Below are positions 84-32,648 of a stretch of DNA of 64,000 nucleotides, piece after piece; the first letter of the stretch is position 1; every line of letters begins with the position of its first letter. A program made the position numbers and the translations under genes. The stretch is from Rebecca billardiae RCC1528 (lineage: Eukaryota > Protista > Haptophyta), in the NCBI GenBank assembly GCA_965240325.2, contig OZ251243.1, forward strand, positions 434,001-498,000. The letters are read 5' to 3'. The notes beneath the pieces were generated by a model. The model was not told where the DNA came from. It ran no database searches and was given only the letters and a program-made list of their open reading frames with translations.

Positions 84-1503
84 TTATTTTTAGATTCCTG
101 TCTGACTCTGAGTGGCATCACTCTCTCAGTCCCGGATTCCGGCGGCGTCGACCGGTCACCGGACCGAGCCGCGATCATCCGCGCCCGTCATCGGCCCCGC
201 GGCCCGTCTGACTGACTGCCATTCACTGCTGATCATTCTGAACTCTCCGGGGCGTGCCTCCGGCCGGAGTGCCGTTCGGCGGCCACTCAACGGGAGAGGC
301 TAAATAACTATACTCATTAGTAGTATTACTTAACAGCGGCCGGCCTACTGAGTCATCGTCACTTGTCGGTACTATTGACAGTGAAATATTGAGCAGTAGT
401 ATTATCGTCATCAATAAGCTATAATAATGAGTGACGACGCTGCTGACAGATGATTACTATTAAACGGCCTTTAATTTAGTTCATTAGATGATATATTAAT
501 TATGACGACTCGTGATAGTAAATACTGATAATGCTGCCAGCGCACCGCGCAGCCGAGTACTCTCTTCCGGCTCACCGGGCCGCCTGTGGCTGCATACTAG
601 TCACCGCGGCGCCCTACTGTGAACTCGTACTGACAGCGAGCTCACTGCCGTGTAACTGCGCCGCGTCCGACGAGCCCGCCGGCCAGTGCCACTCGCGCGC
701 CGCGGTCCGTCTAACTGACGTACCGGGTGCCCGGATTAGTCCGGCTGGCGTCTGCTGATTGAGCTGCTCGTCCGGTATCATCCGGTCCGCCTTGCTCTCA
801 TGATCGGACTTCCTGATGGTCATACACAGGGCAGCAGACGCCCGACCGGGAGGCAGGCACGAAACTAGTGTCAGTGCCGTCGGCAGCCACACCGTCAGTC
901 TGTGAGTCAGGGCGGCGCCATCCTGATCCTGTTCGGAGACCGGAGAGTCCGGCACCAAGTCCAATGGCGTGTGGCACAACCACTTCACAGAGCGTATGTA
1001 TACCGTATTTAGAATGGGTGCGCGACGACTCGATGGAGGAGGCGAGTATGTTGTTGCGGACGACCGCGGAGGCGTCGCGTGGGCGAGGCAGCCACGCGCA
1101 CTGCTTGGCCCACCGGCTGTTCGGCCTTGTGGCGCTGCTCACGAGTTTCGTTCTTGTCGGTTGGGTACCTCGTTGGGGGGCAAGCAATTCCATCAAAAGC
1201 GTTCAGGGCTGCCCATTGGTGTGCTGCGCTAATCAGAACGACTATCGAACCTCTTTTTCATCAACAAATAGTCAGTATGAACGGCACGCGACGTGCATGC
1301 CCAACCCAAGGTACGGCACGATTCTACATTCTCATACCTGTAATCTGTGCATTCGTCAATAAGGACTCGGCGCATGAAATTACGCACGGTGGCAGTGGCG
1401 GCAGCCGCTCGTCAAGTCGAAAGCGCCGGCACACACACGTCGGCCGCAGGTCGCCCCCCACGCAGGCGCGCGCGGAGCACGCGCCACCACCGCCAAGCCG
1501 CGC

Positions 1504-3564
1504 ATGCCGGCGCCCGTCCGCTCCACCGCGCACTCGGCGCTCGAAGGCTCCGTCTTCGACGCCGTCGCCGAGACCGTGCGCACCAACCTCGACCCGGAGG
1601 TGCACCCCGAGCTGCACGCGCGCGTCGAGGCGAGCCGGCGCTCCTCGCCCGACGCGCGGCGCGCGGACGTGCAGGAGGCGCTGGAGGCGCTCGAGGCGGA
1701 CACGTCGGGCGGCGTGGTGGGTCTGCACCTCGTCCTGCTGCTCCTCGAGCCGGCCGGGCCGGGCGGACCCGGCGTCAGCCTCAGCTCCGCGCAGGCGACC
1801 ACGTTTGCGCGCGCCATCGTCCGACGCCTCCAGTCCGTCGAGGAGCGGTGCAAGGGCGAGGAGCTCACGGCGCACCGGCTGCCGCTGCTCAGCTACCTGG
1901 TCGAGCTGTACCGCCCGGACCACGACGTCCGCGCCGCGCGCGAGGCCCTCATCGCCGACGCCAACTTCCTCGAGCTCGCGGCGAAGGCGATCGGCGCGGC
2001 GCGCGCCGACGCCAACCCTGGGCGGGCGTACGTGACGGCGGCGCTCGCGACGGACCTCGCGGCGTGGCTGATGCACGAGCAGCCGCTGGCCGTGCACTGC
2101 GGGGTCGCCGGCCACCCCGCGCTGCTCGCCGCGCTCGGCTCCGCGCTCGTCGGCACCGCGACCCACCCCGTGCCCGCGAGCCGATACGCCCTTGAGCTGC
2201 GCTCGGCGGCGCTCAGCCTGCTGCACGCGTGCTCGCGCGCGTGGCCGATGACGGAGGAGCTGGCGCGCGAGGAGGAGCGGCGGCAGGTGTACGAGCGCGT
2301 GATCGAGGCGGGCGTGCCCGCCGCCATCGCGCACTGCGCCATGGCGTACCGCGAGCCCGTCCTCATCCACGCCGCGCCCGCCGACCGCAGCGCGGCGCGG
2401 CTGCTCGATGTCGGCGCGCCGCTCGCGCCCGAACTGGCCAACCCGCTGTGCCACCTGGAGACGCAGGCGCTCGAGTTCTCGCGCGTGAAGGAGTACATGC
2501 TGGTCGCGACCGTGGCGACCGCGCTGCTCGCCGGCCTCGGCGTCGAGGCGTGGTACGAGTCCAGCCCGGAGCAGCGCGGGCCGGTCCCGCCGTTTGTGCA
2601 CGCGGCACATGACCAGCTCGTGCGGCGCGGCCGCGTGCGCGCCTTCCTGCCGATCGTCAAGCGGCTGCTCAGCCCGCCGGCGGAGGCGTCGGCGGGGTCG
2701 AAGCTGCAGTGCCGCGCGACCGGCGTCAGCCTGCTCGGCGCGCTGCTCACCGCCGCGCAGCGCAACCTGCGGCTGCTCGACCAGCCCTGGCCGACGGCCG
2801 ACGGGAGCAGCGGCGCCACCGACGATGCGCGGGGAAGCGGCTGGGCGGAGGCGGCGTTCGGGGCCACGCCCGTGGAGGCGCGCGGCCGCATGCTGCTCGC
2901 GACGGAGTTCTCGACGTGGATGCTCGTCGACTGCGCAGGCGAGCCGCTCGTCCGCACGCTCAAGGTGTGCCTGCGCGACGGCGCGCTGCGCGAGCTCTCC
3001 GTCCGGGGCTGCCTGGCCGTCGATCTCGCGCTGCATGCTCTCATTGAGGCCGATAGGACTGACGGCACCGAAGCGCCGGCGGGCGCGGGCGCGGCGGCGC
3101 CGGCCGATGCGGGCGCGGCGGCGCCAGCCGATCCGCCGGCGCCGAACGGGACGCCGCCGCGCACGCGCTGCGCCGTCGTCGCGCAAGAGCTCCGCGCCGC
3201 GCCCGCGTGGAGCGCCGGCGTCTCGCCCGCCGCCTCGCGCGCCGCCGCCGCCGCACTGGCCGTTGGCCTTCAGGCACTGGAGGACGACGCACATGACGCG
3301 GCGCGCGTGGCGGGCTGCGCCGCGCCGGGCTGCCGCGGCGCGGCGGGGGGGCAGCCCGTCGCCGGTGAGGGCGGGCTGCGGCTGTGCTCGCGCTGCCGCG
3401 CCGTCTCGTACTGCTCGCGTGAGTGCCAGGCCCGCCACTGGAAGTCCGCCCACCGCGCTGAGTGCATCGCGATTAGTGCTCCGGCGGCGCTGCCGGCCGC
3501 CGCAGCGCCGGGGGCGAAGCACGCGGCGGCGCCGCCGGGCGAGGAGGTGCTCAGCCTCGCCTGA
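1504..3564 (+). CDS. MYND-type zinc finger protein (686 aa, helical N-terminal region)
   Basis: C-terminal CAAPGC...LCSRCRAVSYCSRECQARHWKSAHRAEC matches the MYND consensus; long ORF with GC3-biased codons. Confidence 0.85.
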   Translation: MPAPVRSTAHSALEGSVFDAVAETVRTNLDPEVHPELHARVEASRRSSPDARRADVQEALEALEADTSGGVVGLHLVLLLLEPAGPGGPGVSLSSAQATTFARAIVRRLQSVEERCKGEELTAHRLPLLSYLVELYRPDHDVRAAREALIADANFLELAAKAIGAARADANPGRAYVTAALATDLAAWLMHEQPLAVHCGVAGHPALLAALGSALVGTATHPVPASRYALELRSAALSLLHACSRAWPMTEELAREEERRQVYERVIEAGVPAAIAHCAMAYREPVLIHAAPADRSAARLLDVGAPLAPELANPLCHLETQALEFSRVKEYMLVATVATALLAGLGVEAWYESSPEQRGPVPPFVHAAHDQLVRRGRVRAFLPIVKRLLSPPAEASAGSKLQCRATGVSLLGALLTAAQRNLRLLDQPWPTADGSSGATDDARGSGWAEAAFGATPVEARGRMLLATEFSTWMLVDCAGEPLVRTLKVCLRDGALRELSVRGCLAVDLALHALIEADRTDGTEAPAGAGAAAPADAGAAAPADPPAPNGTPPRTRCAVVAQELRAAPAWSAGVSPAASRAAAAALAVGLQALEDDAHDAARVAGCAAPGCRGAAGGQPVAGEGGLRLCSRCRAVSYCSRECQARHWKSAHRAECIAISAPAALPAAAAPGAKHAAAPPGEEVLSLA

Positions 3565-4653
3565 TCTCGAGCCGGCGCTGCCGCAAGCGCCGCAAGCGCT
3601 GGGCGCACCGCAGCGGCGTTGGGCGCACCGGCGCGCGAGCTCGAGCCGCGCCGGTCGGGCCGCGCGTCGGCTTGCGCCCGCGTGGGTCGGCCCGACTCAG
3701 GCACTCCGAGGGTGGCCCTCCGAGGAGCCTCGTCCGCGGGCGCGCCGCCGACGCGTCTCGGCTGCTGTCGTAATCGCATCAGTCGGACGTCGGCAGCAGC
3801 GCGCTGAGCAAGCAGACGCAGCACGCGCAGCGTGACGCAAGGGAGATAGCCGCGTCACGTAATAAGACGCGTGACGACCTGCTCACGCGGAAGTTATTTC
3901 TCGTCTATCATGGCTGAGATGTGGTTGGAGCAGATACCCCTGGCCATGCATAATCTCGCCTGCCTGAGCTGTACATGTGCGTCTCTTAATCTTAGTAAAC
4001 TGTACAATATACGGCGAGCCGCGAGATCTGATAATGAGCTCTGACGCACAACACACTTTTACCTGATGATCCCCCCCCGACTCCGCTATCGTATTGGCAA
4101 ATAGGATATTGTTCGCGCATCGAACTCCAGCTCAACCTTCAAATTCATCGTATCACGAATAGGCGAGATTGAACAGCACCGTTCGCGTTATCGTTTCCGC
4201 AAGGGCCCTTGGTTTCCGGTCAGATTATTGTATTGACGTCTTGACGAATTAAAGCGCGCACATCAGCACTTGTTCACGTCTCACGACCCGCCTGACGAAA
4301 GTTTGAGCGGGTCATCGCCTCATCGGGTATCCATGTCCATACAGAAGGTCACAATCTCTGCACATGAATACTGAACAAGTCCCGTACTGGGTAGTCTCTC
4401 GAAGCTGTCCACAGCTTCTGAGTTCTGACGTGCACGAAGATACCTCTTCCACGCACCCAAATCCAGCAAGATACCCCATCAACAGGACGTGTTGAGGGCT
4501 GCTGCTACCCCAGCCTACCCCGCCTCGACCGCGGCGAGCGCTCCGATGCTCCGCGGGGTGAGCGTTGCGGGGGTGCCTTCGCGGGCGCAAGAGCGCCAGA
4601 CTACGCTGCCACCTGCTCGCGCGACGGTCACGCCGTCCACGAGCAAGAACCGG

Positions 4654-7600
4654 ATGTCGAGCCCGGCCGCAGCGTGGCGGGCGCGCGACGCGGAGGACTC
4701 GTCGCTACACGCGAAGCCGGTGCCAGCCGCGTCCATGCCCAAGGTGGCGTCGGTGCCGGACATCTCGCGCACGCCGCACTCACAGGTGGCGTTCGAACGG
4801 AGTGACGCCGAAACCAGGACGACTCTCGCGCCGCTCAGCACCGTGCTCGTGGGCCAGGTGCTCAAAGGCGCCACGTCGATTCTGCGCGCGGACGAGCCAG
4901 TCATTCCGCTCGGCGGGCGCAGGGACTTCTTCGCGGGCGACGAGCCCCTTTGGCCAACGGATGCCTCGGCTCGGCCTGCAGCGCCACCCGAGCGCATGGC
5001 CGACTCGCTGCCGCCGCCTTCGCCCGCGGTCCGCCAGCAGCGGCCGCAGCTGAGAGATCCGCTCGGCGCGGCTGCTGACGTGCTGCCACGCAGCCCATCG
5101 CCCTTGGCGAGCGCCGCGCGGCCGCGCACGGCCACGTCGGCCGACGCCGGCTCGCCCGAGGGCGCAGAGAGGGCGTTGCGCCCTCCCGGCGCGTCGCGCT
5201 CGGCCTCTGCCGCGGCCAGCCCGGCTGCATCGTCGCGCTGGCCACTCCGCCGCCCGGCTACATCTCGGGGCACGGCGCCGCTCGAGCAGAGCCACTCGCT
5301 TCGGGAGCGCGCCGTCTCGCAGCAGCTGCCCGCTGGCGCCTCGACGGCGCCGCCGCGCGTGCGGCGTCCGGCGCGGCTGGTCCCCGAGCAGCCGCTGGTG
5401 CCGCTGCTCAGCCGCGCCGCGTCGGACGGCGAGTGCGCGCCGTCGCCGCCGGCCCAATCGGAGCAGCAGGGTCAGGCGCCGCAGCGCGACTCGGCGACCG
5501 CGCTGGCCGCAGCGCTCGAGGCCGAGCGCGCGCGCACGCTCGGCCTCCTCGAGCTGCTGAACGCCATCGGCGCGGCGCGTTCGGAGGGCGAGCTGCATGC
5601 GGCGCTGTGCGCGCACGCGCGCGCCGCGCTCGGCTGCGATGGCGTGAGGCTGCTCGTGCTGCGTGACCAAGGCTCAGGCTGGCGCGTGGCCGCGCACTCG
5701 GCGGGCGGCCAGGCCGTCGCGTCAGCGCCGGCGTACCCTGCCGCCGCAGGGCCGCTTGCCCACGCGCCGCCCGCGCTCATCGGGGCCGCCATGACGGACG
5801 GCGGCGCGGTGTTTGCGCCCGGCTGGAAGCTCGTCGCGTCGCGCAGCGCGCGTGGACCGGCGCTCGCGCGGCGCGCGCAGCCGGCCAAAGTGGCGTACGC
5901 CGCGTGCCCGCTGCGCGCCGACGAAGGCCGGCCCGTACGCGCTCTTCTCGAGCTCTCGTGGCCCCACCGCGCGCCCGGCGCGGCTGAGGACGACGGTGCC
6001 TCCGCCAAGCAGGAGCACGACGGTGCGAGCGCGCAGGACGCCGCGGGCAACGCGGACAGCCCCGGCCGCGCGAGCGCGACGGCCACGTGTGCGGCGACGG
6101 CGCAGCGGGTCGACGTCACCCTGGGCGTGGCGCGCGCCGCGTGCGCCCGGCTGATGGCCCTTGGGCACGACGCCGTGGCTGACAGCAGGCCGGGAGCTGC
6201 ACGCGCCGACGAGAAGGGCGCGGAGAACCCCGCCGTGGCCGAGCAGGCGTGGGCACGCGCAGTCCCCGCGCTGGCCGCGTCGCAAGGCTGGGCGTGTGTG
6301 ACGCGTCATGACGTGACGTAACGTCATGACGTCATGACGTGACGCGAGGAATGGCGTAACGTGACGCCCGGACAGCGCTCTGCCCACGCCTGGCACACCC
6401 GGACCGTCACAGTAGTGCCACAGGCGGCTACGAGCGCGCGCGCGCGCGCGCGCGCGCGCGCGCCACGGGCGGCGCGCCGCGCAGTGCTTCGGGACGGGCC
6501 GCGGTGCAGCGCCCACGGCGATAGCTCGTGGATCCTCCAGCTCCACGGCCACATGGGTGCGGGAGCGGGGGCCCTCGCCTTTGGGCGACGAGCCCACTGC
6601 TGTGCCGCACTGCCACTGACTAACTAGATACGGGAAGGGAACCCCGAAACCAGTTCAACTCGTTTTAATATATCATCAATTACAAGAATACATACGTAAC
6701 GGACGAAACGGTACCCGCCAAAAGACGTGTTGCTATGACGCGTAAATTACGCGTAAAACGCGTTACGTCATGACGTGACGCTGGAAATGGGCGTCATGAC
6801 GCGTCATAGCCCACCCCTGCCGCGTCGGCACTCGGCTGCGTTGGCCTCGGCGGCGGTGGCGGTGAGTCGGGCTTGTACACGGCACTCGGCGCGCTCAGCG
6901 AGCACGGTAGCAGCCTGCTACCAGGCTGCGTGCGCTGTGAGCTGCTCGAGCTGTCGCGCTCGGGGCGAGGCGGTGCGTCGGGCGGGCAGGAGGCGACGGT
7001 GCGCCGGCTCGCGGGCTGGCACGCCGCAGCCGCGCCTGGCGAGGAGATCGGCATCGCCGATGCGCCCGTGGGCCTGCGCTCGCTTCCACTCGGTCTGCGC
7101 CGAGCAATCAACCGGGCGTGCGCGCGCTCTGCCGCGCCGGGCGATGACACTGACGACGGCGGCGGCGGCGAGTCGGCGGCCACTGCTCCGGCGGGCGGTG
7201 AGCTGGTGGTGGGCGCCGGGGCGCACGGCGCGCACGCGCCGGGCGCATTCGCGCTCGCTGTGCTGACCTTTGCGGGGGACGACGGATCGCCCGCACTTGC
7301 GTGCGAGCAGCGCACGGCCGCGGGTGCGCGCTGGCGCCGCCGCGCCCCATCCTTGCCGCCGCCGCGGCCGTGCGGATGACCGAATGACGGCCAGACCGTG
7401 GCGCACCGCCCACCAGCCCGCGCGCCCCTCCCCGCACCGAGCGCGCGCGGCGCGGGCGAGAGGGATCAGACCGTCTGACCACCGGCACCCCTCCGCCACT
7501 CGCGCCGACTGCCGCGCAGACGTGCTCGGAGCGGCTGCCGCGGCCCTCCTCCGCACGCGCAACAGCGTCGTCACGCGCGCGCGCGCGCGCATGCGCTGGG

Positions 7601-8847
7601 CGCGCGCGCTGGACCGCACGCGTCAGCAGGCGACGATGCAAACGTGAGCGCCGCGCGCGCGGCATGGCACCTCGCCGCGCGCCGCCCGCGCCGCCCGCGC
7701 CGCCCGCGCCGCCCGCGCACGCCGCGCCGCCCGCGCACGCCGCGCCGCTCACCACCCCGCGCGCGCCCCCTTCCACGCGCGCAGCGTCGCCGAGCGCGTG
7801 CGCAAGGCGAACAAGACTGCCCACGACATCGAGGCCACCTTCCGCCGCTCGCGGCTGCTGCTCGAGAGCGCCGCGGCGCTGGGCGAGCTGCAGGCCGCGC
7901 TCTCGCACCACGGCGACGAGGGCCAGATCGCCGCGGCCGCGACGAAGGAGTACCTCAAGCAGACCGCCGTGCTCCTGGAGGAGAGCATGTCCGTGCGAAC
8001 GGCGAGTGTGCTTCTGCTCGAGCCGGGCTCGAGCTCGCTGCGCGTCGCGCACACGGCCGTGCGCGGCTCGGCGGGTGACGGCAGCGCAGAGGCGTCCGTC
8101 AAGGCGGCCATCCCGTTGCTCTCGGCCGCCGCGGTGGGCAGCGCCGACACGGTCGTCGTCGACCCGTCGCACAGCGGGCGCCCCACTGCCGGCCAGCAGG
8201 GCCAAGCCCGCTCGATCGTCTTGAAGCGCCAGTCGGCGCTTGCGGTGCCGTTGCTGCGCGCGGGCGAAGTGGTTGGCGTGCTGCAGCTGCTCGGCCGCGT
8301 GCAGACCGGCCGGCTCGTGGGCTCGAGCGCGTCGCGCGAGGCGCTGGCGTTTGAGCCGGAGGACTTGGCGGCGGTGAAGGCGGTGGCCACGCAGCTGGTG
8401 AGCGGCCTCAGCCTCGCGATCGTCAAGGCCGACGCCGAGCACGCGTGGGGGGTGCTCCACCCGACAAGCCGCCCCAGCCTTTCGCTCACGCAGCGCACGC
8501 TCGAGGCTAGAGGGTTCGGCGAGCAGCATGGGGCGGGCGGGCATCGCGGCTCGGTCGGCTCCGTGGCCTCGAGCGTGTCGATAGCCTCGGCAAAGCAAGC
8601 CTACCTCGATACCACGGCGGCGATCGCGAAGCGGAGGCTGCATCGCCGCTCGATCGAATCGGTGTCGCGGCGCTCCTCGACTGACACCGTCAGCGCGCGC
8701 CCGGCGATCGCGATGTCACCGCCGTCCCCAGGCCCAGGAGCCGCCACTTTGACTTTGGACGAGAGACTGAAAAGGCTGTCGGCGGCGGCGCAGGTGGATG
8801 CTGCTGAGGCGGCGGTGGATTCGTCGCCGCAGGTGATGATGGTCTAA
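4654..8847 (+). CDS. Multi-exon protein with several GAF-like domains (exon structure approximate)
   Basis: Coding-like segments at 4654-~6297, 6810-~7310 and ~7790-8847. GAF-like motifs: LLELLNAIGAARSEGELHAALCAHARAALGCDGVRLLVL and LAVPLLRAGEVVGVLQLL...FEPEDLAAVKAVATQLVSGL. Confidence 0.55.
6299..6806. repeat. Intronic segment bounded by 15-bp inverted repeats TGACGCGTCATGACG/CGTCATGACGCGTCA
   Basis: 6299-6313 is the reverse complement of 6792-6806; TGACGT/CATGACG motifs cluster near both ends. Confidence 0.5.
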
Positions 8848-26805: not shown

Positions 26806-28918
26806 CGAATGCGCAGCGCACACGCCGGCGGCCCGCGTTGCTCACGTGGGCTGGTCCCGCATGGGCGCGCAGGCGGTACGTATGAGCAGGTAGGGCGTTC
26901 GGAGTCAACGCAGGTCGCACTCAGATGCGACGCGGCGGCCGGCAGCGCTATGCGCGTCGCGCTCCTTCTGGCGATCCGGTGTTTACGATAGGCGGATGCA
27001 GGGGTTGCCTGGGGCCGCCAGTCGCCACGGGGGGGGGCAGGGCGGCGAGGCAGCGCCCGCCCGGCAGCACATCGCCCCCCCCGTGGACGCTGACTCAAGC
27101 CGCACCCACCCCAGCGCGGCGATCCCACGCCAGGGAGGGCGGGCGGGAGGCGGAGGAGCGCCGCTGGCTGTCCGTGAGTGTGCCGGCGCCGCCGCGGCCT
27201 GCCGCCCGGGGGCCCCGGGCCCGGGCGGGGCCGCTGTGCTCAGGCGTCGGCCGGGGCAGGGTGCGCCGGGGGGCAGTCGCGGCGGAAGCGGTCGGCTGCA
27301 CGACGTGGGCTGCCCTGACCGGCCCCGAAGGTGCGCCTGTCACGCCGAGGGTCGGCCCTCCTGCAGGTACGCTCACTTTCCGCTTGGTACCCGCGCCGCA
27401 AAGGCGAGCTGCTTCCGACTCACATCTCGTCACCGTGCGGTCACTCCGGCGATGCCGCTGCGAGCGCCGAGCCCGCGTCCGGCCAGGTATACGCCCACCT
27501 AGCGGGGAGGGGCACGGGCGGCGGCGGAGCAGCGACGCGGCAGTCATAACGCGATAACCGCCGCGGACTGCCAAACCCACCACTCCCGTCGCGTCGGCCA
27601 TCGCCCCATAACCGCGCGCGCGTCGCGCTCCTTCTGGCGATCCGGTGTTTACGATAGGCGGATGCAGGGGTTGCCTGGGGCCGCCAGTCGCCACGGGGGG
27701 GGGCAGGGCGGCGAGGCAGCGCCCGCCCAAAGAGGCGCAGCGCCAGGCGCCACGCCGGCGTGGCCGGCGTCGGCCGGCGCGGCCGAGGCCAGGCCCGGCC
27801 CCGACCCCCAGAGGCGCAGCGCCCTGCCCACCACCACGCCGCACGCCGCCGGTGTGAGGCCGCGGAGCGGCGGACTGGGTGCCCCCCCCCCCTCCCCCCC
27901 AGCGCTCAGCCCCTGCCAGAGGTCGCCGAGAGCCCGCAGCGACCGGCGGACCACAGGACCACTGGCGTAACCCGCCCGTCGTCGCGCGCCGGCACAGGCC
28001 AGGCGAAGCGCTGCAGGTGACCCGCAGGCCACGCCGTCCACTTGCCCGACGAAACCGCCCAGCAGCACGCGCGCACCGCCGCCGCCGCCGCCGGCCGGCG
28101 AGAGCGCATGCGCCCGAGCCGTCGCGGAACACACCCGAGCCGACATGAGGCGCAGGTATCGACGTCGGCTTGCCGACAACGTCGTCAACCACGCGCCTGC
28201 AGACCGCACGAGCGCCCGTGAAAGCGCGCCGAAAAGGGGCGTGCGAGGTGACGCGCACGGTGCGCGAATGGTGATGGCCGTGCGGCGCACGAATGACGAT
28301 CGGTGCGCGCGCACGATGAGCGGTGCACGCGCGGGCGGATCGGAGCGCGCGCATGATAAACGGCGCATGATACTCGGCGCGCGCGCATGACGGCGCGCGC
28401 GCATGATGATCGGCGCTGGTCGGTGCGCGCGCATGATGATCGTCACGCGATGATCGGCGCGCGCGCATGACCATGCGCGCGCGTGACGAATTCGCCGCAA
28501 CGGCTCGCGCGAGAGGCACAAGGCGATTGACGATGAACGCGACCACGTTCGAGCGCTCGAGCGAAGCAGGAGGTGATGAGTGAGGAAGATGGCACAGGAA
28601 TGGGAGAGGAACGCGTGGCGCGTGGCGGGAAGGGCCAGGCACGCTCGGCGTGAGGAAAGGAACGCGCGTAGAAACGGAACGGAACGGAAAGCAGCGGTTC
28701 GAGCGATAGACAGGAGGTGATTGACGACGATGAGCGCGTGCGCGCTCGAGCGACGCAGAAGGTGACGAGCGAGGAAGACCAAGGCCAGGTGAAAGCGCCG
28801 CAGGTGGCCAGCGGGCCACGTCGCTTTTCGCGCCCGAAAACGCCCAGCAGCGCGCGCGCCCCGCTGCAGTGGCAGCCGACCGGCGAGAGCTGCATCCGCC
28901 AGAGCCGCCACGCGGCGC

Positions 28919-29250
28919 AGGTATCAACGCCGGCCCGCCGACAACGTCGTCCCCGACACCCCGGCCACAGACACCACGTACACCCATGTAAGCGCGCCGA
29001 AAGGTGCGCGCGAGGATGGCGCACTCGGCACCCGAATGATGATGATGGTTGCGCGGAGCACGAATGATGATCGGCGCGCGCGGGTATCAACGCCAGCCCG
29101 CCGACGACGTCGTCCCCCACGCCCCGGCCACAGACACCACGTACGCCCATGTAAGCGCGCCGAAAGGTGTGTGCGATGATGGCACGCTCGGCACCCGGAT
29201 GATGATGCGATGGTTACGCTGAGCACGAAGTGATGATCGGCGCGCGCACA
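28919..29250. repeat. ~163-bp tandem duplication, with a diverged third copy near 28152-28312
   Basis: GGTATCAACGCC..CCGCCGAC..CAGACACCACGTAC..CATGTAAGCGCGCCGAAAGG repeated. Confidence 0.8.
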
Positions 29251-29339
29251 TGATGATGATCGGCGCGCGCGCATGAGAAGACAGGTGCGAGTGACGCGCG
29301 GAGAAGATGCGCGCGGAGACGATAGGCGCGGAGGACATA

Positions 29340-29944
29340 GGCGCAAGTAACGCGCGGAGGAGATAGGCGCAAGTAACGCGCGGAGAAGATAGGCGCAAGT
29401 AACGCGCGGAGAAGATATAGTAGGCGCAAGTAACGCGCGGAGACAGGCGCAAGTAACGCGCGGAGAAGATAGGCGCAAGTAAACGCGCGGAGAAGATATA
29501 GTAGGCGCAAGTAACGCGCGGAGACAGGCGCAAGTAACGCGCGGAGAAGATAGGCGCAAGTAACGCGCGGAGAAGATATAGTAGGCGCAAGTAACGCGCG
29601 GAGACAGGCGCAAGTAACGCGCGGAGAAGATAGGCGCAAGTAAACGCGCGGAGAAGATATAGTAGGCGCAAGTAACGCGCGGAGACAGGCGCAAGTAACG
29701 CGCGGAGAAGTAGATAGTATAGGCGCAAGTAACGCGCGGAGGAGGTATAGGCGCAAGTGACGCGCGGAGACAGGCGCAAGTAACGCGTGGGGAAGTAGAT
29801 ATAGTAGGCGCAAGTAACGCGCGGAGAAGTAGATAGGCGCAAGTGACGCGCGGAGACAGGCGCAAGTAACGCGCGGAGAAGTAGATAGTAGGCGCAAGTA
29901 ACGCGCGGAGATGAGATAGGCGCAAGTGACGCGCGGAGAAGATA
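29340..29944. repeat. Tandem array of ~22 copies of GGCGCAAGTAACGCGCGGAG with 3-14-bp linkers, organised as an 80-bp trimeric higher-order repeat
   Basis: Linkers cycle AAGATA / AAGATATAGTA / ACA. Confidence 0.95.
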
Positions 29945-29991
29945 GGGTGCGCACACGATGATCGGCGCATGATGATCGGCGCGCGCGCGAG

Positions 29992-30071
29992 GGATAGACA
30001 GATAGACAGATAGACAGATAGACAGATAGACAGATAGACAGATAGATAGACAGATAGATAGACAGATAGAC
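29992..30071. repeat. (GATA/GACA)n microsatellite
   Basis: Seen directly. Confidence 0.95.
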
Positions 30072-31625
30072 GCGCGAGTGAGCGACGGCGAGCTGTAGAG
30101 AAGGGTGAGTCGTGCGGCGGCGAGTGGCGGCGGCGTGCTTGCAGCGCGGCAGCGGCGTGCGGCGAGCGCGAACACGCGGAGCGCGCGCGGCTCCGCTGTT
30201 GCGCCCCGAGGGGCCCGCGCCGAAGAAGCGCGCTCGCTCGAGCGGGGGGCAGATCGAAGGTGATGAAGCGCGCGGTTCCGCTCAAGCGAAGTAGAAGGTG
30301 ATGAGCGACGAGTGTGCCCGACGGACGACAGCGCAACGACACCTCACGCGCCGCCCCGCCGGCCGCCCAACAGATGGCCGAGAACGGGACGCCGAAGTAG
30401 CATGTGTGCGCTCACTGCCCGCGCCGCCGACATGCGCTCCAGCTCGGACGAAGGGCAGAAGGTGTTGTTGAGCGCGCCCCCGCGAGCGCGCAGCAGCTGG
30501 TGAGGAGCGTGTTGTTGAGTACGCCCCCGCGAGCGCGCAGCAGCTGGTGAGGAGCGTGGAGCGTGCCCGACACACGCCCGCTGGCGCCGCCCCGCCGTGC
30601 GCCCAGCCGCCGGACGCTGCCGATGGACGCAGAAGCAGCATGGATGCGCACGAGTCTCGTCCAGCGCCAAAATGCGCTCGCGCGCGAGCGAGGCAGACAG
30701 CGCCGAGCGCGCCCACGCTCGAGCGAAGCAGGTGGAGATGAGCGAGGAGCGCGCACGACGGACGGCAGCGCACCGGCACCTCACTTACCACCCCGATGTG
30801 CGTCCCCGATGGGCGCCCGGCCACCGGACGCCTCAGAAGGACACCCAGCACAAGCGTGGTCGCGCACGAGCGGATGAGAGAAGCAGAAGGCGCTGAGCGT
30901 TCCCCTCGAGTAAAGCAGTGGGCCATGAGGAGGAGGGAGCACGACGGACGGCAGTGCCCAGCACCTCGCGCTCCGCCTCGCAGTGCGCACGACCGTCGGA
31001 TGCCGCCGCAGAAGGACGCCGAAGCAGCATCGTGAGAGTTCGAGCGTGATGCACGCGCACCACGCCAGGGGGGGACAACGAGGAACGGGGAGCGAAGGAG
31101 GCGGAGGAGCGCCGCTGGCTGTCCGTGAGTGTGCCGGCGCCGCCGCGGCCTGCCGCCCGGGGGCCCCGGGCCCGGGCGGGGCCGCTGTGCTCAGGCGTCG
31201 GCCGGGGCAGGGTGCGCCGGGGGGCAGTCGCGGCGGAAGCGGTCGGCTGCACGACGTGGGCTGCCCTGACCGGCCCCGAAGGTGCGCCTGTCACGCCGAG
31301 GGTCGGCCCTCCTGCAGGTACGCTCACTTTCCGCTTGGTACCCGCGCCGCAAAGGCGAGCTGCTTCCGACTCACATCTCGTCACCGTGCGGTCACTCCGG
31401 CGATGCCGCTGCGAGCGCCGAGCCCGCGTCCGGCCAGGTATACGCCCACCTAGCGGGGAGGGGCACGGGCGGCGGCGGAGCAGCGACGCGGCAGTCATAA
31501 CGCGATAACCGCCGCGGACTGCCAAACCCACCACTCCCGTCGCGTCGGCCATCGCCCCAAATCAGCCCGGGCTGATTTAGCGCTGCCGCGCGGCGGCCGC
31601 GCGTGCCAGCGCACACGCCGCTGGG

Positions 31626-32648
31626 ATGGTTGACCTGAAGCGCCCCAAGTGTGATCATGCTGGCTGCACCAAGCAGCCTTCGTGCAGCGTGCCGGGCGGC
31701 GCGCGCCCCAGCCAGTGTGCTAAGCACAGGCTGCCTGGCATGGTCAACGTGAAAAACCCAGCGTGTGACTATGCCGGCTGCAACAACCCGCCTTCGTTCG
31801 GCATGGCGGGCGACGCGCATGCCAGCCGGTGCGCTGCGCACAAGCTGGCTGGCAATGGCATGGTCGATGTGAACAACCACAAGTGTGATCATGCGGGCTG
31901 CACCAAACAGCCTTCGTTCGGCATGCCGGGTGACGCGCGCCCCAGCCTGTGCGCTGCCCACAAGCTGGCTGGCATGGTCAATGTGGTGAGTCCCAAGTGT
32001 GATTACGCTGGCTGCACCAAGCAGCCTTCGTTCGGCATGTCCGACGACCCTCGTGCCAGCCGGTGCGCCGCGCACATGGTGGTTGGCATGGTCAATGTGA
32101 GGAGCCCCAAGTGTGATCATGCCGGCTGCACCAAGCAGCCTTCGTTTGGCATGCCGGGCGCCGCGCGTGCCAGCCGGTGCGCTGCGCACAAGCTGGCTGG
32201 CATGGTGGATATGAAGGGCCGCAAGTGTGATCACGCCGGCTGCACCAGGCGGCCTTCGTTCGGCATGCCAGGCGACACGCGCGCCAGCCTGTGCGCTGCG
32301 CACAAGCTTGCCGGCATGGTCGACGTGAAGAACCCCAAGTGTGATCACGCCGGCTGCACCAAGCGGCCTTCGTTCGGCATGCCGGGTGACACGCGCGCCA
32401 GCCGATGCGCTGTGCACAAGCTGGCTGACATGAAGCTTTTTGGGAGTGGTGCGCACAAGCGCGAGCTGGAGCCAGGCATGAGCACCACAGAATCGAGCGC
32501 CGCCAAGCGCCAGCGGATGCGCACTTTAAGCAGCACAGCCACTGCCCCGGACGTCGCGGCAGCGCAGCTGGGACCGCTGGTCACAGCCCGCGTTGTATCG
32601 GCGGCGCCGCCGAATGTACCGCTGGTGATGGCCAAACGTGTATTATAA
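31626..32648 (+). CDS. EsV-1-7 cysteine-rich repeat protein (7 repeats of ~38 aa)
   Basis: Seven copies of MV(D/N)VxxPKCDHAGCTKQPSFGMPGDARASRCAAHKLAG (C-x4-C...C-x2-H), matching the EsV-1-7 repeat; basic KRQR motif in the tail; no introns. Confidence 0.88.
   Translation: MVDLKRPKCDHAGCTKQPSCSVPGGARPSQCAKHRLPGMVNVKNPACDYAGCNNPPSFGMAGDAHASRCAAHKLAGNGMVDVNNHKCDHAGCTKQPSFGMPGDARPSLCAAHKLAGMVNVVSPKCDYAGCTKQPSFGMSDDPRASRCAAHMVVGMVNVRSPKCDHAGCTKQPSFGMPGAARASRCAAHKLAGMVDMKGRKCDHAGCTRRPSFGMPGDTRASLCAAHKLAGMVDVKNPKCDHAGCTKRPSFGMPGDTRASRCAVHKLADMKLFGSGAHKRELEPGMSTTESSAAKRQRMRTLSSTATAPDVAAAQLGPLVTARVVSAAPPNVPLVMAKRVL

Follow-up and report, generated by a model that had tools for sequence, protein, structure and literature searches.

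Tyrosine-recombinase retrotransposons are, to our knowledge, the least understood order of retroelements; we know of no reconstitution of their integration step, and DIRS-1 is the only member that we know to have been tested experimentally. A split-direct-repeat layout defines the Ngaro, PAT and VIPER elements of this order (PMC8547959, PMC4157794, PMC6681497). In DIRS-1, the internal joint region was shown experimentally to be required for retrotransposition, and the DIRS-1 reverse transcriptase (RT) made cDNA in trans from a protein-deficient truncated element, with retrotransposition not completed (PMC7192593). Known non-autonomous relatives are TOC1 (PMC9940879) and SIRE (PMC6681497). The locus described here lies in a 64,000-nucleotide stretch of the genome of the haptophyte Rebecca billardiae RCC1528 (contig OZ251243.1, positions 434,001 to 498,000; hereafter the window), and with good confidence we regard it as a very young copy of a non-autonomous split-direct-repeat retrotransposon of the Ngaro-like branch of the DIRS order, with cis parts that it has in common with a 6.7-kb relative. 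We place it as a clear-cut further case of an already known class and not as a novel element type.

Results

A preliminary description of this locus reported a repeat X and a repeat Y in the order X-Y-X-internal-Y, with copies that looked identical by eye. Alignment bore this out: the two copies of X (26952-27062 and 27618-27728, 111 nt) are 100% identical, and those of Y (27146-27608 and 31097-31559, 463 nt) form one gap-free block, also at 100% identity. The window copy runs X1, an 83-nt spacer, Y1, 9 nt, X2, a 3368-nt interior and Y2; read on the minus strand, this is A1-interior-B1A2-(u)-B2. The features are as follows, the RT-encoding relative L041 (the partner) being described further below:

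26952-27062, minus strand: B2 (X1), the 3'-terminal repeat in sense orientation, identical to 27618-27728; the outer ATAACCGCGC is missing here
27063-27145, minus strand: spacer u, unique, 83 nt, between A2 and B2; once per copy and, by alignment, strongly conserved in L041
27146-27608, minus strand: A2 (Y1), the 5'-terminal repeat in its internal copy, matching 31097-31559 at all 463 nt
27609-27728, minus strand: B1 (X2 with the preceding 9 nt, TAACCGCGC), which forms the joint with A2
27729-31096, minus strand: non-coding interior
28301-28511, no strand: array of ATGATCGGCGC-type units of 16-30 nt; the motif is also in the far longer array of the partner
28915-29248, no strand: two copies of a 163-nt unit, 89% matches
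29275-29946, no strand: main tandem array, about 24 copies of a 26-nt unit with higher-order periods of 81/161 nt; its length differs among copies
29993-30071, no strand: (GATAGACA)n microsatellite, 9.9 units, by tandem repeat finding
30462-30558, no strand: two copies of a 47-nt unit, by tandem repeat finding
31097-31559, minus strand: A1 (Y2), the 5'-terminal repeat in sense orientation, identical to A2; the right boundary CCATCGCCCC is invariant at 18 of 18 distinct loci
31559-31564, plus strand: target-side motif AAATCA; the family consensus right after CCCC is R-A-A-W-Y-T

This order, with A1 = A2 and B1 = B2, was kept in all 14 of the full copies examined. At the level of the family, X is 121 nt long and directly adjoins Y1, most copies having ATAACCGCGC ahead of X1; these 10 nt are missing before X1 in the window copy. 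Y is 462 nt long at this level and terminates in CCCC, with 31558 as the last base of the element proper; the base at 31559, an A in the window and a G in 12 of 18 copies, is probably target sequence. The internal Y/X joint, CCCC/ATAACC, is the right end joined to the left end, and in nine complete copies the right terminus CCCC and the left terminus ATAACCGCGC together give the internal joint CCCC/ATAACCGCGC.

The interior was 100% identical at 10 loci. A tandem array had been noted within it, and several were found; the exact ATGATCGGCGC motif occurs seven times within the element and not once in the rest of the window. TOC1 also carries an internal tandem array, of 76 bp. The earlier reading that the element holds no recognisable protein was upheld by the searches made: the six longest ORFs gave no Pfam family at E<=0.001, the sole match listed in the element ORFs (Cytochrom_B559, 16.5 bits, E 0.0056, no passing stretch) being noise, and tblastn of the partner ORFs against the element, interior included, found no trace of them. 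An Rfam search of the element gave no family. RNA folding of the B2-u region was modestly more stable than that of shuffled sequences (z = -2.2 only), and therefore no self-priming hairpin is claimed.

A search of the genome revealed at least 35 copies of the family with unrelated flanks, and the loci that it returned were used for the flank comparisons. Ten full-length copies at unrelated loci differed by 0-4 substitutions over 4607 bp, and X1 = X2 and Y1 = Y2 inside every copy compared. At least 15 contigs of the 41-contig assembly carry the same structure, again between unrelated flanks; the left boundary at 26952 recurs, with unrelated flanks, at more than 20 loci, and more than 20 loci have received the whole X-u-YX-interior-Y unit undivided. 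Single-unit forms were also present, namely X-u-Y at C21:1045080-1045745, a match limited to query positions 1-666, and X-interior-Y in L051, and no permuted copy (X-interior-YX-u-Y) was among the genome matches of the element. Altogether, these data demonstrate that the element is real and mobile and that the family is very young, being active currently or very recently; the full-length copies with conserved ends that one would look for at unrelated loci were found.

The window copy is flanked by GCTAT and AAATCA and has no target-site duplication (TSD), as first described, and the comparison of empty and filled sites agrees. Empty paralogous sites (n = 19) read GCCAGCT/GAAACTGG, and at the filled site on C32 the element sits exactly at T/GAAACT, with zero duplication and zero deletion. 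Another subfamily is represented at exactly this position in another host-repeat copy; two subfamilies have struck this T/GAAACT spot independently. Following CCCC, the target base was G or A at +1 in 17 of 18 cases, A at +2 in 18 of 18 and A at +3 in 14 of 18; an exception to the rule of no duplication is one copy (L036) with a duplication of 14 bp. The window copy lies upstream of an EsV-1-7-repeat gene, at a distance of 67 nt. A copy on C22 likewise lies beside EsV-1-7 repeats and was considered as a paralogous site of the window copy; it was rejected, since it takes a different position inside the repeat unit, and the resemblance is a coincidence.

The A1 end is constant, in contrast to the B2 end, which varies. 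Among 21 distinct left (B2) junctions, nine are complete, nine are short by 1-4 nt and three are short by 10 nt; additional copies miss 59-123 nt at this end, and in 9 of 15 copies of the partner family the XYX match begins 3-172 nt inside. A variable B2 end is not predicted by a purely reciprocal site-specific crossover. Compared with the joint, the C32 copy is short of the dinucleotide AT, which does not turn up at the opposite junction either; the C32 junctions were not reproduced by a simple reciprocal crossover in which 3 nt overlap, the 'trinucleotide' idea that PMC7192593 cites. Just an imperfect xAA pattern is present, TAA on the element side and RAA on the target side.

Longer coding copies had been predicted from the window sequence, and what was found is a 6.7-kb relative, the L041 family, with a gag-like ORF and RT/RNase H; the predicted recombinase was absent from all seven full-length intact copies (6.66-6.76 kb). 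Internal-deletion derivatives of 1.9-5.8 kb also occur. L041 matches the window element in layout, spacer, right-flank signature, ATGATCGGCGC array and joint, the last being identical and following the same right-end-plus-left-end logic. Its minus strand carries a gag-like ORF1 (773 aa) and an RT/RNase H ORF (574 aa, PF00078). Non-coding blocks alone are held in common: X (83%), the final 100 nt of Y (89-90%), the spacer, and the array, which lies at 2660-3490 in L041 and is next to B1 in the window element. That the termini are only 83-90% alike counts against the partner reading; all XYX matches were compared with all Pfam RT matches in case another coding element had more similar termini, and no pair lay within 6 kb. 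The 574-aa pol ORF, with RT and RNase H only, gave no match to a Dam or other methyltransferase, and neither an endonuclease domain nor an integrase was detected in the partner. The partner family is young, as is the window family, which is compatible with co-activity.

Relatives of the partner RT were examined among the 150 best representatives, and some of them, at E about 1e-27 to 1e-31, have a C-terminal recombinase (P0027, P0078) or a Dam methyltransferase (P0132). The recombinase domains of P0027 and P0078 matched the L042 recombinase by BLASTP (E=7e-7 and 1e-7, respectively). The best solved-structure match of the partner RT was Ty3 RT, at only 4e-8; its nearest neighbours in a language-model feature search included Euglenozoa RT/RNase H clusters, as a lead only, and a word-index protein search gave only four matches, without names. 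By sequence similarity, the partner RT is placed in a clade of recombinase-linked RTs, and the partner appears Ngaro/VIPER-like rather than PAT/TOC-like; it is judged nearer to Ngaro/VIPER, as defined in PMC4157794, because it has no methyltransferase.

The split-repeat layout recurs in four unrelated families of this genome, and recombinases were found only in three other split-repeat families (searches with PF00589 and two recombinase protein queries). The recombinase-encoding families differ from the window element in joints and termini, and only family 2 has the same ATAAC end. Family 2 has a single recombinase-bearing copy, which lacks A2-u-B2, and in its recombinase N replaces the usual H of HxxR. 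Family 2 (L043/L051; RT 51% identical to that of the partner) and family 3 (L052; RT 33% identical) were rejected as nucleotide relatives, as neither has nucleotide similarity to the window element, and the L042-type RT-RH-recombinase element was unrelated by BLASTP. In family 3, which encodes a recombinase, B2 is truncated in two of seven copies and is 5 nt short in one more; a variable B2 is therefore not specific to the families that lack a recombinase.

Discussion

The element has no coding capacity or ORF remnants, and its termini are shared by a coding element of this genome, as is expected of a non-autonomous element. Judged from these shared sequences, it most likely spread by borrowing the RT of the 6.7-kb relative. 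What it keeps in common with that relative is confined to cis parts: the B repeat, both ends of the A repeat, the spacer, the B/A joint and the ATGATCGGCGC array beside B1. A transcript would run from A1 to B2, and the RT/RNase H of the relative, probably together with its gag-like protein, would make cDNA from this transcript in trans. Internal B1A2 would then be the template for restoring the termini, keeping A1 = A2 and B1 = B2 identical, and the product would enter T/RAAWYT sites with the ends CCCC and ATAACC and no target duplication. As the partner lacks a recombinase, integration would most probably depend on a tyrosine recombinase that another family provides.

The preliminary description had proposed a non-autonomous, TOC1-like element of the tyrosine-recombinase clade. 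Layout, a partner with shared termini and the RT clade speak for that proposal, and the recombinase itself and a PAT/TOC-type methyltransferase did not materialise. Autonomous members of the DIRS order have a recombinase, which neither the element nor the partner carries; this lack is expected for a non-autonomous member and unexplained for the partner. Tentatively, and with some doubt, one might propose a recombinase-less Ngaro-like lineage, made up of the partner, its deletion derivatives and the 4.6-kb family, that still inserts precisely at T/RAAWYT without duplication, either by a linear-cDNA route or through a three-tier chain, in which the non-coding element would take RT from a recombinase-less element that would itself take its recombinase from a third family.

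The same element and RT partner could also be combined with integration that uses no tyrosine recombinase. The intermediate would be linear cDNA, possibly single-stranded, whose 3' end (CCCC) is fixed and whose 5' end varies, and it would enter T/RAAWYT through the partner's ORF1, the N-terminus of the partner's RT, target priming or break repair by the host. Such a route would accommodate the seven of seven full partner copies that lack a recombinase, a B2 junction that varies by 0-4, 10 or 59-172 nt beside an invariant right junction, the AT that the C32 copy has lost and that does not turn up at its other junction, and the single 14-bp TSD, and DIRS-1 intermediates are chiefly linear single-stranded cDNA (PMC7192593). 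However, we consider it unlikely: the CCCC/ATAACC break lies within continuous B1A2, so that defining it takes a site-specific step, the partner ORFs have no detected endonuclease domain, B2 is also truncated in recombinase-encoding family 3, and a strong target motif with no TSD suits conservative recombination.

Crypton-like DNA movement, in which a recombinase excises a circle via the repeated Y/X joints and puts it back elsewhere without passing through RNA, would fit the absence of a TSD, the site-specific target, an internal joint that equals the joined ends and the existence of recombinases in the genome. It is nonetheless very unlikely, as the only relatives with shared termini encode RT, with a Ngaro-type coding strand and repeat layout, the 35 or more near-identical copies would be hard to obtain by cut-and-paste, and no permuted copy was among the matches. 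An ordinary LTR remnant is highly improbable, and so is a pair of elements, neighbouring or nested (a mini X-u-Y beside X-interior-Y): the structure can formally be divided into two head-to-tail X...Y units and single-unit forms were found, but the entire unit moves as one piece, its layout is repeated in unrelated families, its X and Y ends differ and are not of LTR type, TSDs are absent and the partner has no integrase; the single-unit forms are the expected leftovers of inter-repeat recombination, comparable to the solo AB repeats in Cafeteria (PMC8547959). Perfect repeat identity could arise from collapsed or mis-joined reads, but with unrelated flanks on so many contigs and existing empty paralogous sites, the chance of an assembly artefact or segmental duplication is negligible. 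Of the outcomes that the preliminary description had named as fatal to its reading, neither a single copy nor TSDs with an integrase-encoding partner was found.

For the preferred reading, a non-autonomous Ngaro-like element served by an RT partner, one genome offers a non-coding element, an RT-only partner, separate recombinase-bearing families, exact ends, a target motif and natural empty sites. This set would allow one to ask where the recombinase comes from and whether a linear cDNA intermediate underlies the variable B2 end. In annotation, this family, with its copies of about 4.6 kb, at least 35 in number, should be masked as transposable elements together with the partner family, so that neither is taken for genes.

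Comparison with known systems

Similar to the Ngaro elements of Cafeteria burkhardae (PMC8547959), the element described here has the order A1-[interior]-B1A2-B2, identical repeat pairs and no TSD; in its partner, RT/RNase H comes after a gag-like ORF and a methyltransferase is absent, and both systems reside in a high-GC protist host and include recombination-derived single-unit forms. Dissimilar from those elements, the window element is non-coding, its RT-encoding partner also lacks a recombinase ORF, and the window family has an often shortened B2 and a defined target motif, T/RAAWYT. TOC1 of Chlamydomonas reinhardtii (PMC9940879) is likewise a non-autonomous, multi-kb element with split terminal repeats, and it relies on the proteins of related elements, as the window element probably does; however, autonomous PAT/TOC members have a methyltransferase and a recombinase, whereas the partner here has neither, and TOC1 belongs to a different host lineage and has no sequence similarity to the window element. 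SIRE, related to VIPER in Trypanosoma cruzi (PMC6681497), is also a non-coding derivative with the terminal repeats of an RT-encoding split-repeat element, but SIRE consists of the A2-B2 region only, about 0.4 kb, while the window element keeps the full A1...B1A2-u-B2 and adds an unrelated 3.4-kb interior. Lastly, DIRS-1 of Dictyostelium discoideum (PMC7192593) shares an internal sequence that equals the joined termini and has many fragmented genomic copies, yet DIRS-1 differs in its inverted terminal repeats, its complementary internal region and a recombinase of its own.

Structure and copies of the element

The X and Y repeat pairs of the preliminary description were recovered at the same positions by a repeat search and by pairwise alignment, and both pairs are 100% identical. 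The order of the element is X1, an 83-nt spacer, Y1, 9 nt, X2, a 3368-nt interior and Y2:

26952-27062 and 27618-27728: X1 and X2 (B2 and B1), 111 nt
27146-27608 and 31097-31559: Y1 and Y2 (A2 and A1), 463 nt
29275-29946: largest interior array, 26/81-nt period (Tandem Repeats Finder)

Tandem Repeats Finder placed five arrays in the interior, where one had been noticed before. The G+C content of the element is 65-72%, as in the remainder of the window, a composition at which chance alone should produce long ORFs; in keeping with the earlier reading of no recognisable ORF, the six longest matched no Pfam family at E<=0.001. An Rfam search of the element gave no match. The sole Pfam match listed for its ORFs, Cytochrom_B559 at 16.5 bits, is noise.

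Copies were searched for in the window's own assembly (72 Mb, 41 contigs). There, more than 15 contigs carry the X-spacer-Y-X block together with the interior, at 35 or more positions in total; all copy counts are lower bounds, with 40 candidates scored in each search. When 40 fetched loci were compared with the window by BLAST, similarity repeatedly began at 26952 and ended at 31558-31563, with unrelated flanks, and the full-length copies with the same ends that the preliminary description had anticipated at unrelated loci are thus present. Ten full-length copies carry 0-4 substitutions relative to the window copy in 4607 bp, a second subfamily is ~0.5% divergent and differs in array length, and a third has an interior ~78% identical; within each copy examined, X1 equals X2 and Y1 equals Y2. 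The window element is mobile, and its ends are exact. A match to X-spacer-Y alone (query positions 1-666) was also observed at G000:C21:1045080-1045745, which is the form expected from A1 x A2 recombination and is comparable to solo AB repeats or to SIRE.

In most copies ATAACCGCGC precedes X1, which makes the B repeat 121 nt long and directly adjacent to Y1. The internal joint reads CCCC|ATAACCGCGC and so joins the right end of the element to its left end; in the window copy these 10 nt are missing in front of X1.

Target sites and the neighbouring gene

At 18 distinct loci the bases that follow the terminal CCCC are G (12), A (5) or T (1), then A (18/18), A (14), A or T, C or T, and T, and the base ahead of a complete left end is T in 8/9 loci. 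Copies of different subfamilies at C32:883821 and C16:636325 have nearly identical left flanks, and a pattern search with the C32 flanks joined returned 19 uninterrupted copies of a host repeat reading GCCAGCT|GAAACTGG. The C32 insertion lies precisely between the T and G of the empty site, with the target neither duplicated nor deleted; insertion is therefore free of target-site duplication (TSD) and site-selective, and one host-repeat base was used twice, independently, by the element family. The exception is a window-family copy (G000:C7:1038092-1044100) that, unlike all the others, combines a 14-bp direct target duplication (TAATCTCAGGTATC) with a left end 10 nt short. Most of the 19 occurrences of the host repeat, which carries GCAGTGGCGGATGCCAGCTGAAACTGGGGCTTTTGG (L045-L050, e.g. 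G000:C15:1896077 / 1905793), form inverted pairs spaced 7-10 kb apart, and a large DNA transposon probably has this repeat as its terminal inverted repeats.

At the right junction of the window copy, a perfect 20-nt palindrome (AAATCAGCCC GGGCTGATTT) occupies 31559-31578, and the left flank at 26930-26951 (…GGCAGCGCT) is the reverse complement of the right flank at 31579-31600 (AGCGCTGCC…). This copy may have inserted into a site able to form a hairpin, or into the terminus of a different element. A gene follows:

31626-32648, plus strand: intronless ORF, 340 aa, about seven 114-bp (38-aa) Cys/His-rich repeats

These repeats we take to be of the EsV-1-7 type. Only 67 nt separate the ATG from the A1 end, and the insertion is therefore within the upstream region of this ORF; in a paralogous gene, a repeat unit is interrupted by a further copy of the element (C22, L033).

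A coding partner without a recombinase

Weak matches to the interior adjoin a Pfam RT match at C1:3348012, and the fetched locus (L041) holds a 6.67-kb element with the X-spacer-YX-interior-Y layout of the window element and two ORFs:

First ORF, minus strand: 773 aa, zinc-knuckle-like C-terminus, no Pfam family
Second ORF, minus strand: RT/RNase H, 574 aa (PF00078, 34 bits)

The two elements have in common the joint, the spacer, ~120 nt following X2 and an array of ATGATCGGCGC units, of which seven exact copies lie within the window element and zero in the remainder of the window. X is 83% identical between them, and Y is 89-90% identical over its last 100 nt and ~70% over its first 150 nt; the right flank of L041, CCCC|AAAACA, is the signature of the window family. 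No trace of either L041 ORF was found in the window element. Seven intact copies of the partner RT (99-100% amino-acid identity) are present in the genome, along with fragments; full partner elements measure 6.66-6.76 kb among copies with both ends scored, and internal-deletion derivatives 1.9-5.8 kb. Judged by the coding strand of the partner, the window element has its sense strand on the minus strand, as first proposed. Of the proteins sought in longer copies, a gag-like ORF and RT/RNase H are present in the partner; what is unusual is that no copy of this RT-encoding partner has a recombinase.

The best solved-structure relative of the partner RT is Ty3 RT (only 4e-8). In an exhaustive profile search, 27 representatives scored under 1e-30 and 2453 under 1e-10; most of them are RT/RNase H proteins that stand alone and measure 500-650 aa. 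Among the longer relatives, P0027 and P0078 have a C-terminal recombinase domain, with weak Pfam PF00589 matches and BLASTP matches to the genome's own recombinase (E=7e-7 and E=1e-7, respectively) that include the H-S-[FL]-R-R-G motif, and P0132 has a Dam methyltransferase; DIRS-order elements have both as accessory domains. Recombinase and methyltransferase domains are each missing from the partner, and the lack of the latter would place it, by domain content and the definitions of PMC4157794, nearer Ngaro/VIPER than PAT/TOC.

Recombinase-bearing families and the ragged B2 end

A PF00589 profile search of the genome gave matches confined to five copies of one family (L042), and P0078 as query revealed two further recombinase sources, family 3 and one copy of family 2:

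G000:C33:126500-134500, about 673-6299: L042, split-repeat element, five copies, internal 36-nt array
G000:C19:144000-155000, element about 145041-153970: family 3 (L052-L054), ~8.9 kb, complete Ngaro-like element
G000:C20:1651000-1660000, 2404-8528: family-2 copy L051, X-interior-Y, lacking A2-spacer-B2

L042, flanked by (TG)n and (TA)n, has one ORF of 1286 aa in which RT-like and RNase H-like motifs, recognised by eye where Pfam detects no RT, are followed by a C-terminal tyrosine recombinase. Family 3 (at least 6 copies) has four ORFs (gag-like, 523 aa; RT, 438 aa, 33% identical to the partner RT; RNase H, 240 aa; recombinase-like, 364 aa), A and B repeats of 797 and 536 nt, and the joint CTAA|CCCC. 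L051, whose form looks as if produced by B1 x B2 recombination, alone among the family-2 copies has a recombinase-like ORF (552-aa frame; R...K...NxxR...W...Y, with N replacing the usual H of HxxR), and its RT shares 51% identity with the partner RT. Family 2 is the best, though weak, candidate recombinase donor because it has the ATAAC left end of the window family (joints AACA|ATAACT vs CCCC|ATAACC).

ATAAC/GTTAT motifs cluster near the B|A joint in the window (27546-27617) and in the same region of L041, L043 (family 2) and L042, in three unrelated split-repeat families. The copies are direct in the window family, and in family 2 and L042 they form inverted pairs. These clusters are possible recombinase-binding sites.

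The left (B2) end is ragged: among 21 distinct junctions, 9 are complete, 9 are short by 1-4 nt and 3, the window copy included, by 10 nt, and additional copies begin 59-123 nt within X1 or the spacer. Of 15 partner-family copies, 9 have an XYX match that begins 3-172 nt inside, and the A1 end is constant. Such raggedness is not predicted by a strictly reciprocal crossover. It leaves room for recombinase-independent insertion by a linear-cDNA route, and DIRS-1 cDNA was found to be mostly linear and single-stranded (Malicki et al., PMC7192593). In the recombinase-encoding family 3, used as a control, B2 is complete in 4/7 copies, 5 nt short in 1/7 and ~164-191 nt short in 2/7, and raggedness is therefore not peculiar to families lacking a recombinase.

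Proposed mode of transposition

The structure of the window element was observed directly, and it is best read as a non-autonomous Ngaro-like retrotransposon. The element would be transcribed from the minus strand, the transcript copied in trans by the partner RT/RNase H, and the internal B1A2 copy used to restore the ends; the product would then enter T|RAAWYT, with no duplication, through a presumed integrating enzyme. Alternatives weighed against this reading were recombinase-independent insertion, movement at the DNA level, an LTR or composite element, and an artefact. Annotated Ngaro elements are known from a haptophyte (bioRxiv 10.1101/2022.10.25.513657), and TOC1 (PMC9940879) and SIRE (PMC6681497) are known non-autonomous DIRS-order elements, as is proposed here for the window element.
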